This document shows, piece by piece, positions 54,214 through 57,903 of a DNA stretch of 64,000 nucleotides. The position numbers were made by a program, and so were the translations under genes. The stretch lies in IMG/VR virus record IMGVR_UViG_3300049215_000771, positions 434,001-498,000 of that record; one strand, 5' to 3'. Positions within the stretch are counted from its first letter, which is position 1. The number at the start of each line of letters is the position of its first letter. The notes under the pieces were generated by a model. It was not told the DNA's origin and did not search any database. It saw only the letters and a program-made list of their open reading frames with translations.

Positions 54214-54289
54214 TAGCCGGGAGGGGACTCGAACCCCTAAGACTCTAGGTTTGAGCTAGAGATGTCTGCCAAGATTGCATCACCCGGCC
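54214..54289 (-). tRNA. tRNA-Leu(CAA) with a short variable loop
   Basis: TCTAG-CTCAAAC-CTAGA; variable region GTCTT (5 nt); A73. Confidence 0.85.
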
Positions 54290-54658
54290 AAATCTTCCAA
54301 CAACTGATCCACACAACTTTCCAGGTCCACCAGCGATTCACCCTCGAAAGTGAATTCCAACAAATGTTCCGCTTCAACATCCCTCATCTCAGGCATGAAT
54401 GGATACGCCTTCAAGAAGGCTCTCGTCTTGTCGGGATATTCCTCGTCCCAAAACAAGTGCAAGTTCGTCTTGCCGAAGCGACCAACATGGGTCACACACT
54501 GACACTTCTTCTGGCAGAACTCCTTGATCTCCTTCAGAATCTCGAAACTGAGCAGCTTGAACTGGAACGTCACAGCCCTGGTCTGGACCTGAACCTCCAG
54601 GTCGTCACCCAGCATTACATCCCAATTGTCAGTATGGGCCACCGCCGCCACGCCAGAC

Positions 54659-54904
54659 TCAGCCATCTTTCGTTACCACCGTTCCTTCTGGAATCTCAAC
54701 ATCTTGAATGTTGCGAAACATCAAGGCCACTCCCTCGCCGGCCTTGGCGGACTCCCTCAAGCGAGCGTAGTTTTCGATGGCGGACAGGACGGCGGTGTGC
54801 GAGCCGATGGTCAGTTTCTCACCAACCCGCACATCGCATTCCAGTCTGCCAACAAGCTGTGTGCCCTTGACTCGGTACACACGCTCAACGGTCATCACCT
54901 TCAT
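54659..54904 (-). CDS. Stand-alone EF-Tu domain II-like protein
   Basis: RVYRVKG..LVGRLE..VRVGEKL...AIE......SAKAGEGVALMFRNI...EIPEGTVV parallels EF-Tu domain II. Confidence 0.7.
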   Translation of the reverse strand: MKVMTVERVYRVKGTQLVGRLECDVRVGEKLTIGSHTAVLSAIENYARLRESAKAGEGVALMFRNIQDVEIPEGTVVTKDG

Positions 54905-55187
54905 TGAATTCCTTCAACTGTTCCTTGAAGGACAATTCCGACAAGATTTCGTGTTCGTGTTTGCTCCGCTTGGGAAACTTGTCACTGTGGCAGACTCCAC
55001 ACTGAGTATTGCCGCAGTCCCAGGCGTCCTTCTTGCGGAACCGACCGATCTGTTCGTCGCATTCACAATCAACGACGTAGGGATCAGCGCCGATCTTGCC
55101 TCGGTCCTTGTTGCTCTCGACGTGCATACGCCGATGTTTCTTCCACTCACGACGAGCAATCCGCTCATCTTCGTGCCATCGTTTCAT
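54885..55187 (-). CDS. Hypothetical basic Cys-rich protein
   Basis: GRFRKKDAWDCG..QCGVCH. Confidence 0.55.
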   Translation of the reverse strand: MKRWHEDERIARREWKKHRRMHVESNKDRGKIGADPYVVDCECDEQIGRFRKKDAWDCGNTQCGVCHSDKFPKRSKHEHEILSELSFKEQLKEFNEGDDR

Positions 55188-55678
55188 CAGTACCTCCGTA
55201 ATGGGAATAGAAGTTAGGCTTCTGTTCCCCGGAGATACGAACGAAATTACACATGGCTACTCCTGCATGTAGGGCAAAGAACTGTCCAATCTTCCCAGGA
55301 ATGGCCCCCTTCAGTCCTGGTGATGTCTTCAACCAGCCACCCCGCATCTTTGGCTACTTGTGCCATACTTGCCCAGGTAGCTCCCGGCTCGTGCTGTTTG
55401 CCGTCCTCGTAGGTGTTGCATTTCTCGCAAATGAACCCGGCATAAACCAGCGCCACAAGTTCATATGGGTCGTCAGCATTAGTCGCTTCCATCGCCCTCG
55501 CTCTCCTTAACATGCTTGTCGAATTCTTCCATCAACATCTCGGTCTGAGCGACCAATTCCGGTGATGGCTCCGTTGTCCAGGGGATAGAAGGAACCTTCA
55601 TTCGCCACTTGCGACAAGTACACCAGTGAGTTTCCGTTTTACGGGTGAACTTCATTTCGTGTCTGATCTTACCCATAG

Positions 55679-55755
55679 TGCCCAGGGTGGGACTCGAACC
55701 CACAAGACCCTCGTTCTGAGCGAGAGATGTCTGCCTATTTTTGCATCACCTGGGC
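55679..55755 (-). tRNA. tRNA-Leu(CAG) with a short variable loop
   Basis: TCTCG-CTCAGAA-CGAGG; variable region GTCTT; A73. Confidence 0.85.
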
Positions 55756-55759
55756 ATAT

Positions 55760-55834
55760 TGTAGGGACGTATTCGATGACCTTTGCTCCCCGTAGTTGAG
55801 AACAGCTTTCGCTTGGGGTCATCTAGCCCCTACA
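55760..55834 (-). ncRNA. Candidate small three-way-junction RNA between tuf and tRNA-Leu(CAG)
   Basis: TGTAGGG/CCCTACA and GATGACC/GGTCATC helices enclosing AGC-GAAA-GCT and a second hairpin; TAAATA immediately upstream. Confidence 0.45.
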
Positions 55835-55870
55835 GTATTTAGACGCACCTGCGTCCAAGAGGTTCGCAAT

Positions 55871-57052
55871 TTAATCGAAAACCTCAGTCACTTTTCCAGA
55901 ACCGACCGTTTTGCCGCCCTCCCGGATGGCGAACTTGATGCCGTTCTCCAGTGCGATACCCTTCTCCAGCGTGACCAGGCAGGCCACGTTGTCGCCGGGC
56001 AGCACCATCTGAATGCCATCTTCGAGTTCGATGCCTCCGGTCACGTCCGTCGTGCGGAAGTAGAACTGCGGCTTGTAGCCCGTGATGAACGGGGTGTGCC
56101 GACCGCCTTCTTCCTTCGACAGAACATAGACCTGGGCCTTGAACTTCGTCCTCGTTTTGATCGTCCGGGGCGCTGCGATGACCTGGCCACGTTCGATCTG
56201 GTCATGCTTGACGCCACGGAGCAGGACACCGACGTTCTCGCCGGCCTCGGCCACGGACATCGGCTTGTTGAACTGTTCGACGCTGGTAACGACGCTCTCA
56301 AGGATGCCGCCCAGCCCCAACACTTCAACCTTGTCGCCGGCCCGCACCGTGCCCTGTTCGATCTTGCCCGTAGCCACAGTACCACGGCCCAAGATTTGGT
56401 GGACCCCCTCGATTGCCATCAAGAACGGCCTGTCCACGATCCGAACCGGGTCCGGGATGTAGGTATCCAGTGCGGCCAACAGGTCGTCGATGCACTTCGC
56501 TGCTGCCGGGTCTTCCGGGTTCTCCAGCGCCGGGCGTGCGGACCCTCGAATGACCGGCACGTTGTCGCCATCAAACCCGTACTTCGTCAGCAACTCCCTG
56601 GTTTCCATTTCAACCAGGTCGATGAGATCGGTGTCTTCAACAAGGTCGATCTTGTTGATGAACACCACGATGTTGGGAACGCCAACCTGTCTGGCGAGCA
56701 GGATGTGTTCCTTCGTCTGCGGCATTGGCCCGTCCGCCGCCGACAGCAGGAGTACCGCACCGTCCATCTGAGCGGCCCCCGTAATCATGTTCTTGACGTA
56801 ATCCGCATGACCAGGACAGTCAATGTGAGCGTAGTGTCGAGTTTTCGTCTCATACTCGACGTGGCTGGTGATGATCGTGACCACCTTGCTGGGGTCACGC
56901 ACCGTCCCGCCCTTGGCGATGTCATGGTAGCTCTTCCGCTTGGCAAGTCCCTTGGTTTCCTGCACGGCGAGGATCGCCGCCGTCAACGTCGTCTTGCCGT
57001 GGTCGATGTGTCCAATCGTACCGACGTTGACGTGAATCTTCTTCGTTTCCAC
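55871..57052 (-). CDS. tuf: Elongation factor Tu (planctomycete-type switch I)
   Basis: [18 protein letters not shown] and full domains II/III; AGGAG RBS, GTG start. Confidence 0.97.
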
Positions 57053-57151
57053 TTCAAACTCCTAGTTGGTTCCAACGAGGAACCGTTCAGGGCCATTAGT
57101 CCCGCCAACCCAACCCTTTCGAGTCTTTTCACCACAACGAGTGAATGCCAG

Positions 57152-57165
57152 AGTTGTCAAAGAAC
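57152..57165 (-). promoter_or_regulatory. boxA-like antitermination element in the tuf leader
   Basis: GTTCTTTGACAACT a few nt after the tRNA-Leu 3' end; resembles rrn boxA (GCTCTTTAACAA). Confidence 0.5.
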
Positions 57166-57173
57166 CGATGCAG

Positions 57174-57256
57174 TGCGGCGGGTGGGAGTCGAACCCACAA
57201 GGGCTTTCGCCCGCAGCGTTCTGAGCGCTGTGCGTTTACCGTTTCGCCACCGCCGC
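57174..57256 (-). tRNA. tRNA-Leu(CAG), long V arm
   Basis: CAGCG-CTCAGAA-CGCTG; GGGC-GAAA-GCCC V arm. Confidence 0.93.
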
Positions 57257-57735
57257 AACTTACTTCTTCATTTCGTCGTACACTTGCAAGGCAAAATCAA
57301 CCCACTTCGCCTTGACATCAGGAGGCATCCCCTTCTCGTCGGCCTTCGCCTCGCAGAGATGTTGATACGCCTCACGGGAGTCAGCTTGTTGGTAAAAAGC
57401 CAACAGCGTGTTCTGCATGTCGTTGAGAACTTCGTCTTCGCTGGGAACCGCATTCCAGGCCATTATTCTCTCCTTATCCACACGCTCCATCTTCGATCTT
57501 GACGATCACCTTGTCAGTTTTCACCGCATAGGTCAGCATCGTCCAGTCGGCGTCCTTTTCCTTCACCTTCGCCGCTTGCAAGGCCACCTTCTTAAACCTC
57601 TCCACGACGGCGAGGGCAGCCCGCAACTCGTCAGTTTCCTGCTTCGTTGCCGAGATCACCACCGAGCGTTCGCCACGCACGGCCCCGTCGTAACCCTTGA
57701 TGACTTCTTCAGCTTTCATAGTTGCCTCGCAGAAA

Positions 57736-57826
57736 TTGGCAAGGTGGGATTCGATACCCACACGGTAGATTCGTCAACCTACCAACCCCCTCTAGCGGGG
57801 GCTGCGTCTTCTTCCGCCACTTGCCA
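57736..57826 (-). tRNA. tRNA-like RNA with an aberrant anticodon loop (GCTAGA) and 8-nt T loop
   Basis: TGGCAAG/CTTGCCA, A73; CCCCC-GCTAGA-GGGGG; 8-bp V arm; GTGGG-TATCGAAT-CCCAC. Confidence 0.6.
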
Positions 57827-57827
57827 G

Positions 57828-57903
57828 TGTCCAAGGTGGGACTCGAACCCACAAAATCACCAGATTCTCAACCTGGCGGCTTTGCCAATTTGCCTACCTG
57901 GAC
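57828..57903 (-). tRNA. tRNA-Leu(GAG) with a short variable loop
   Basis: CCAGG-TTGAGAA-TCTGG; variable region TGATTTT; A73. Confidence 0.85.

Follow-up and report, generated by a model that had tools for sequence, protein, structure and literature searches.

Why does a phage encode the same leucine tRNAs twice, with and without a long variable arm? The question is raised by a stretch of 64,000 nucleotides (hereafter the window; bases 434,001-498,000 of the 532,729-bp IMG/VR virus record IMGVR_UViG_3300049215_000771), in which the tRNALeu genes with the anticodons CAA, CAG and GAG each exist as a short copy (CAA-short, 54289..54214; CAG-short, 55755..55679; GAG-short, 57903..57828) and as a long, class II copy (CAA-long, 42342..42260; CAG-long, 57256..57174; GAG-long, 50291..50209), all six on the minus strand. 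The short genes have the structure that defines type I (armless) tRNALeu, in which a leucine anticodon is combined with a variable loop of only about 5 nt. Judged from their sequences, they probably encode working leucine tRNAs, completed with CCA and charged by the host's leucyl-tRNA synthetase (LeuRS), and thus provide a second, structurally different copy for heavily used leucine codons.

The genes were detected with three kinds of model. CAA-short and GAG-short were reported by ARAGORN, and CAG-short by the same program at a relaxed threshold only; the Rfam tRNA model scored the three at 40.1 bits (CAA-short, E 1e-7), 40.7 bits (CAG-short) and 56.9 bits (GAG-short); and the covariance model of the short family described below, R1, at 81.8, 84.9 and 77.7 bits, respectively (78-85 bits overall). 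The long copies were found by both ARAGORN and Rfam. These results bear out the original prediction, made from the sequence alone, of short CAA, CAG and GAG tRNALeu genes that parallel long copies with the same anticodons. Two further leucine tRNAs of the window, also found by ARAGORN and Rfam on the minus strand, are single copies: tRNALeu(UAG) (46041..45961), with a variable arm reduced to 12 nt; and tRNALeu(UAA) (48256..48178), with an arm much reduced, to about 10 nt.

The variable region of the short copies measures 4-7 nt overall: in the ARAGORN folds and by hand it is GTCTT in CAA-short and CAG-short and about 6-7 nt long in GAG-short, and the helix is absent. The three long copies have an arm of about 15 nt with a hairpin (4 bp/4 nt), and variable-arm length within the genome is graded 15, 12, 10, 6 and 4 nt. 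The long variable arm (>10 nt with a helix) is the one canonical feature of class II tRNALeu that the short copies lack. Their cloverleaf comprises an acceptor stem of 7 bp; an anticodon stem of 5-6 bp, whose 7-nt loop has U33 before the anticodon and a purine after it, at position 37; a D arm with a 3-bp stem and a loop of 11-14 nt (13 nt in CAA-short) containing G18G19; a canonical T loop (TTCGAGT); and the discriminator A73. All the stems are intact and CCA is not encoded. The folds also agree with the prediction that CAA-short and CAG-short have a D-arm motif (GATGCAA..GGCAGACATCTCT) and the GTCTT loop in common.

The conservation of these features was analysed in an alignment of 27 short leucine tRNAs from 12 sources, from which R1 was built. 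U8, G18G19, two adenines of the D loop, T54-T55-C56, A58 and A73 are invariant in this alignment, and the last base of the variable loop is U in 26 of the 27 members. The RNAalifold consensus is a cloverleaf without variable helix, with compensatory changes in 20 of its 21 pairs. These changes, together with the scores of the family model, indicate that the short tRNAs are not chance cloverleaves; the cloverleaf and its covariation indicate conserved functional RNAs rather than decaying copies, and neither broken stems nor lost T-loop or D-loop bases, as expected of pseudogenes, were found. Relatedness was analysed by comparing each short copy, with the variable region removed, to a set of 305 tRNAs that covers all isotypes and was taken from this genome and related loci: the nearest tRNA was always a leucine tRNA, first the short ones of other phages (75-86% identity) and next the long ones. 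Within the genome, GAG-short and GAG-long have six of the seven acceptor-stem pairs and the T arm in common (79% core identity). The short genes are thus most likely, as far as sequence comparison can tell, leucine tRNAs descended from class II tRNALeu that have acquired the type I shape.

The same data make it highly improbable that the short genes stand outside translation, whether as pseudogenes in decay, as decoys absorbing tRNA-directed toxins or as homing-endonuclease targets. Such a reading would draw on an HNH homing-type endonuclease gene (57868..58347, minus strand; phrog_10822, 162.6 bits), which at its 3' end runs into the first bases of GAG-short, at the 5' end of the tRNA; on a clearly aberrant 91-nt tRNA-like gene that abuts GAG-short on the other side; and on the neutralisation of PtuAB toxicity by overexpressed tRNATyr (PMC12673091). 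However, all the stems are intact and covary, with no variation in the T loop, G18G19 or A73; a decoy against arm-directed toxins would be expected to retain the arm; and the fit to codon demand reported below is unexpected for RNAs that do not translate. The 91-nt gene (57736..57826, minus strand) is class II-shaped and its anticodon was read by ARAGORN as CUA (amber suppressor type). Its loop is non-canonical (five C, GCTAGA, five G; U33 absent), its D loop lacks GG, its T loop has 8 nt, and it was not reported by Rfam at the gathering score; the same position is occupied in the closest relative (contig L009) by a 95-nt tRNALeu(UAG).

The short tRNAs belong to two lineages: lineage A, with the D arm GATGCAA..GGCAGACATC, includes CAA-short and CAG-short; and lineage B includes GAG-short and tRNAs of cultured phages. 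The D-arm pattern of CAA-short and CAG-short was found in three more viral contigs. The phage elongation factor EF-Tu, used as a search marker for relatives, gave 37 loci; in about 12 huge-phage contigs with EF-Tu proteins 67-81% identical to that of the window, the EF-Tu gene stands amid leucine, serine, tyrosine and phenylalanine tRNAs, and short leucine tRNAs are present beside long ones. All five leucine anticodons were found in short form among the related contigs. Contigs L016 and L017 carry each of the five leucine anticodons once, three in short and two in long form, indicating that the two forms substitute for each other within a set.

A tree was computed with the variable region and the anticodon masked, which leaves 67 columns only and most of the forks open. 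The short/long label has to change 13 times on this tree, compared to 34 times (range 24-41) with the labels shuffled, and CAA-short lies inside a 95%-supported clade of ten short tRNAs. At least two of the label changes are forced by well-supported branches, and the arm was therefore lost more than once. The prediction that CAA-short and CAG-short form a distinct lineage is supported by this clade and by the conservation of the lineage in other phage contigs and in bacterial arrays.

Armless leucine tRNAs are also encoded by cultured phages. Megablast of the 5-kb region and blastn of CAA-short (lineage A) gave no match among GenBank phages; blastn of GAG-short matched annotated tRNA-Leu genes in 100 GenBank phage records. 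The short leucine tRNAs of cultured phages are 73-77 nt long, score 62-77 bits with R1 and have the same armless architecture as those of the window: five in Sinorhizobium phage Phosso (PV764938, 469 kb), in addition to two R1 matches of 80-82 nt; two short and no long ones in Mycobacteriophage Wildcat (NC_008206, 78 kb), which encodes no synthetases; one short and no long one in Acinetobacter phage phi1_092033 (PQ859668, 104 kb); and two short, unannotated, plus two long ones in Tunturiibacter phage Tunturi_5 (PP885688, 309 kb). Tunturi_5 thus mixes both forms like the phage described here, whereas Wildcat and the Acinetobacter phage have short copies only. These matches mean that armless tRNALeu has been present in public phage records, some of them from 2006, labelled as plain tRNA-Leu or, in Tunturi_5, not labelled at all. 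Within a limited literature search, no paper remarking on the missing arm of these cultured-phage tRNAs was found, and the only paper found on armless tRNALeu was the study of Streptomyces discussed below, a result that is not proof of novelty for phages or arrays.

The short form was also found in bacterial genomes. A 17-base pattern with a variable gap was scanned against one genome per species (596 Gb) and matched at least 119 stretches; since chance matches are expected in hundreds over 596 Gb, loci without the motif inside a tRNA were discarded. The motif lay inside a short tRNALeu in 4 of the 80 loci examined. Three of the genomes concerned are Acidobacteriota metagenome-assembled genomes (MAGs; two of them Pyrinomonadaceae), in which the motif-bearing short tRNALeu belongs to arrays of 19-34 tRNA genes. 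An Obscuribacteraceae MAG carries four tandem short leucine tRNAs (UAA, CAG, CAA, GAG) on a 681-kb contig, and four matches of long-tRNALeu length (80-84 nt) elsewhere in the same genome. Of 151 Acidobacteriota genomes sampled evenly, only eight have short leucine tRNAs, which are thus rare in this sample; seven of the eight have them inside clusters of 8-28 tRNA genes, some mixing short and long forms; both lineages, A and B, are represented in the sampled arrays. In the Acidobacteriota, one candidate host group for the moss phage, the armless form is a component of accessory arrays rather than of the housekeeping set. Taken by their sequences, the two short lineages most likely circulate in accessory tRNA sets, namely phage tRNA islands and long bacterial arrays.

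The long tRNA arrays described in bacteria (PMC8421152, PMC4758250, PMC5966550) resemble the phage set in consisting of accessory duplicates of housekeeping isoacceptors, often near homing endonucleases; they differ in density, packing at least two tRNAs per kb, whereas the phage tRNAs are scattered among protein genes. Armless tRNALeu is unmentioned in these three papers. In Anabaena, 23 of 26 array tRNAs were aminoacylated in vivo (PMC8421152).

Arm loss is restricted to leucine. We scored the distinct tRNAs of the arrays, the cultured phages, the related contigs and the phage itself for variable regions no longer than 8 nt: none of the 47 serine and none of the 25 tyrosine tRNAs has such a region, compared to 61 of the 105 leucine tRNAs, a proportion that does not represent a natural frequency because some of the loci were chosen for their short leucine tRNAs. 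Even with loci chosen in this way, their serine and tyrosine tRNAs provide a fair control for the loss of the arm in leucine only. SerRS and bacterial TyrRS use the long arm; bacterial LeuRS reads A73 and the elbow formed by the D and T loops, and neither the arm nor the anticodon, so that leucine tRNAs can shed the arm and serine and tyrosine tRNAs cannot. Both the anticodon and the long arm are dispensable for the E. coli enzyme, and an armless truncated tRNALeu is still active (PMC9976931). The elements used by LeuRS of this type are A73, A15:U48, G18G19, A20a and the contacts of the D loop with the T loop (PMC9976931); the short tRNAs keep A73, G18G19, an A-rich D loop and a U48-like base.

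The doubled anticodons are those in demand. Leucine is the commonest amino acid in the phage open reading frames (ORFs; 9.2%), and the codons UUG, CUG, CUC and CUU, read by the anticodons CAA, CAG and GAG, make up 93% of the phage leucine codons, the undoubled anticodons serving UUA (2.5%) and CUA (4.3%). Doubling is not limited to leucine: eleven other same-anticodon pairs are present in the genome, and the 14 pairwise comparisons, leucine included, gave identities of 60-79%. At least eight of the other pairs (Gly-GCC, Pro-UGG, Pro-CGG, Pro-GGG, Gln-CUG, Val-GAC, Met and Phe; whole-genome positions 715-36269 and 89409-89493 and window positions 61699-61772) are no more than 65-76% identical. 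The leucine pairs are one case of a genome-wide pattern in which old divergent doubles, rather than recent duplicates, are kept. Divergent same-anticodon pairs are likewise kept in relatives such as contig L010.

This pattern bears on the main rival explanation, which we regard as possible, although clearly less likely than the one proposed above: the short genes may be ordinary extra leucine tRNAs without any defence role, whose arm is dispensable to LeuRS, whose compact genes persist in mobile sets and whose sole benefit is a larger supply for abundant codons. The 93% of leucine codons read by the doubled anticodons, the graded arm lengths within the genome and the independence of LeuRS from the arm (PMC9976931) are all consistent with mere dosage and tolerated loss; in addition, the changes between short and long on the tree, at least 13, and the mixing of both forms within single arrays indicate that the loss is easy and recurrent. 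On the other hand, the persistence of many isoacceptors as old divergent pairs (60-79% identity) suggests selection for difference beyond dose, and the short lineages were kept, with all five anticodons, across distant phages and arrays.

Charging of the short tRNAs has to be considered in a phage that has no LeuRS of its own. LeuRS was not found in the phage genome: PF00133, PF13603 and the bacterial LeuRS model TIGR00396 match nothing other than the IleRS, the MetRS and the ValRS-like enzyme, and the best phage score was 80.5 bits, against a LeuRS cut-off of 548. Consequently, the short and the long forms must both rely on host LeuRS, by which we infer that the short tRNAs are charged. In the mechanism that we propose, a CCA-adding enzyme would complete the 3' ends of the short tRNAs; host LeuRS would charge them through A73 and the D-loop/T-loop elbow; the charged tRNAs would read UUG, CUG and CUC/CUU; and the short copies would double the gene supply for the anticodons that serve 93% of the phage leucine codons.

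The original prediction had proposed charging by a different synthetase. This was not sustained, as the phage lacks a LeuRS and the short tRNAs keep the LeuRS elements listed above. In its widest form the idea would have the short tRNAs served by another enzyme or charged with another amino acid (by the 507-aa ValRS-like enzyme of the phage or by a host synthetase other than LeuRS), with the leucine codons recoded in part or an orthogonal pair formed. In favour of the idea, several phage synthetases are trimmed and of putative specificity (the 507-aa ValRS-like enzyme, a 408-aa ThrRS and a PheRS of mitochondrial type), and CAG-short and the phage tRNAPhe have identical acceptor stems. However, we consider this very unlikely: the leucine identity set is intact and invariant across the family, whose nearest relatives are leucine tRNAs; tRNAs of this kind are also present in synthetase-free phages such as Wildcat (78 kb); the ValRS-like protein, the only candidate in the phage, is matched best by ValRS models (355 bits, compared to 91 bits with the LeuRS model); and misreading 93% of the leucine codons would be very costly.

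Several points weigh against working, host-charged tRNAs. Four sequencing runs were compared over 5,001 bases around the region, and contigs of three moss/plant metatranscriptome runs match pieces of window 53728-58500 without differences (for example 54963-55257, 55764-55914 and 56262-56527); these contigs from RNA libraries do not cover the tRNAs and may be DNA carry-over. The Rfam general tRNA model gives CAA-short and CAG-short only about 40 bits. The type I tRNALeu(CAA) of Streptomyces is not charged by E. coli LeuRS, although Streptomyces and human mitochondrial LeuRS charge it (PMC6614811), so that acceptance by an arbitrary host LeuRS is not guaranteed. The DNA runs that contain the region are moss metagenomes. 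The exact matches place the phage in independent samples, where it may have been transcribed; conserved stretches of the EF-Tu gene attract reads of many other organisms.

The known tRNA that comes closest in structure to those of the phage is Streptomyces coelicolor tRNALeu(CAA), of type I (PMC6614811). It also has a 5-nt variable loop and coexists in a single compartment with class II tRNALeu, namely four type II isoacceptors, a single LeuRS serving both types (PMC6614811). The differences are that the S. coelicolor tRNA is one undeletable housekeeping isoacceptor, whereas the phage has three accessory copies, each with a long-arm twin, and no LeuRS; and that A73 is not an identity element in the Streptomyces tRNA, whereas it is invariant in the phage-type family. 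The tRNALeu of animal mitochondria likewise combines a class I shape with A73 and is charged by a LeuRS of bacterial type (PMC9976931); whereas mitochondrial tRNAs have weakened elbows and a biased composition, those of the phage combine a canonical T loop with G18G19 and stems rich in GC.

An escape from toxins that target class II tRNAs is a plausible role for the short form, by analogy with known systems. MenT1 and MenT3 target the leucine and serine tRNAs of M. tuberculosis. Retron-Eco7 PtuAB and Septu cleave tRNATyr within its variable loop, which phage tRNATyr avoids by having a distinctive loop (PMC11555353, PMC12673091, PMC13096335); AbiEii, a toxin of abortive infection, seems to act preferentially on class II tRNAs (bioRxiv 10.64898/2026.01.19.700257). 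The defence of T5 and SP15 against PtuAB and Septu resembles the present case in that a phage class II copy has a variable region unlike that of the host and lies in a tRNA region rich in homing endonucleases; it differs in that resistance there is conferred by a tRNATyr with a distinctive, longer variable loop, whereas here a tRNALeu has lost its arm. Speculatively, a back-up lacking the class II hallmark might keep leucine decoding going when host defences attack or deplete the long-arm tRNAs. More broadly, and only tentatively, arm loss in tRNALeu might be a recurrent, selected signature of mobile accessory tRNA sets that shields leucine decoding from arm-recognising effectors (PtuAB-type nucleases, AbiEii/MenT-type nucleotidyltransferases), leucine being the sole class II isotype whose synthetase can do without the arm. 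A further point to the contrary is that no toxin acting on the variable arm of tRNALeu has been demonstrated.

The genomic setting of the short genes is rich in translation genes. The window contains 16 tRNA or tRNA-like genes at 38.9-63.1 kb, all on the minus strand with translation genes between them, spaced 0.1-4 kb apart among protein genes, a density below the definition of an array. The EF-Tu gene (393 aa; 55871..57052; EF-Tu models 590-615 bits) lies between the two tRNALeu(CAG) genes, with CAG-long just upstream and CAG-short directly downstream. The phage translation set comprises EF-Tu and at least seven aminoacyl-tRNA synthetases: AspRS (16169-17833); a ValRS-like enzyme of 507 aa without editing domain (23000-24523); a ThrRS of 408 aa whose N-terminal part is missing (28527-29753); CysRS (46939-48258); a monomeric PheRS of mitochondrial type (48302-49369; TIGR00469, 386 bits); and, outside the window, IleRS and MetRS (whole-genome coordinates 37029-39797 and 53253-55010), in addition to a nucleotidyltransferase of the CCA-adding type (256320-258047). 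The EF-Tu gene and the five synthetase genes of the window are on the minus strand. The small ORFs adjoining the tRNAs gave no Pfam or PHROG match except the HNH endonuclease and a weak protease-like match. Host-like metabolic genes are also present in the window (2547-5975 and 35955-37100, minus strand), encoding a CTP synthase, a ribonucleotide reductase large subunit and a protein of the glutathionylspermidine synthase family.

The whole genome encodes 56 tRNAs according to ARAGORN and 59 according to Rfam tRNA matches. The cumulative GC skew has its minimum at about 505 kb, with tRNAs on both sides oriented away from it; coding density is 91% with standard stop codons. The record is labelled a provirus; host flanks were not seen and a terminal repeat is absent. 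Despite the standard stops, two tandem tRNAs with the anticodon CUA (whole-genome 121393-121540) and a 94-nt tRNA with the anticodon UCA (SeC-like; whole-genome 80837-80930) are present; TAG is the rarest stop in ORFs of at least 150 aa (72, compared to 141 TAA and 218 TGA). Seven tRNA genes of 83-109 nt (whole-genome 4872-4970, 13184-13278, 25615-25716, 27217-27314, 55504-55586, 89409-89493 and 498893-499001) have apparent inserts of 11-36 nt in or near the anticodon loop (ARAGORN intron mode), which may be introns, extended anticodon arms or misfolds; one of these genes may correspond to a further armless tRNA with the leucine anticodon AAG. Three matches in the window fall outside the default ARAGORN list, all on the minus strand: a partial tRNA (60726-60791, 32 bits) resembling tRNAPhe(GAA); a second tRNASer(CGA) (49537-49627, 42 bits); and a weak 116-nt match with R1 (62507-62622).

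The armless tRNALeu itself was already known as type I; the wider pattern, in leucine only, across phage and array sets and in several host phyla, appears under-described. Such genes are easily overlooked in annotation, two of the three in the window being near or below the default threshold of one tool. Textbooks and one experimental study present the bacterial armless tRNALeu as a rarity of Streptomyces with an unusual LeuRS. The hosts now span the Actinomycetota, Pseudomonadota and Acidobacteriota, in addition to the Obscuribacteraceae genome, and either many bacterial LeuRS accept type I tRNALeu or such tRNAs do something else; if the signature of arm loss in mobile sets is true, many bacterial LeuRS, and not just that of Streptomyces, would charge type I tRNALeu. 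The cultured phages Wildcat, Phosso and Tunturi_5 make the armless tRNALeu directly testable. Its restriction to leucine, never serine or tyrosine, offers a natural indication of the synthetases that depend on the arm, and the armless tRNALeu is a concrete candidate for a counter-measure to defences that target class II tRNAs.

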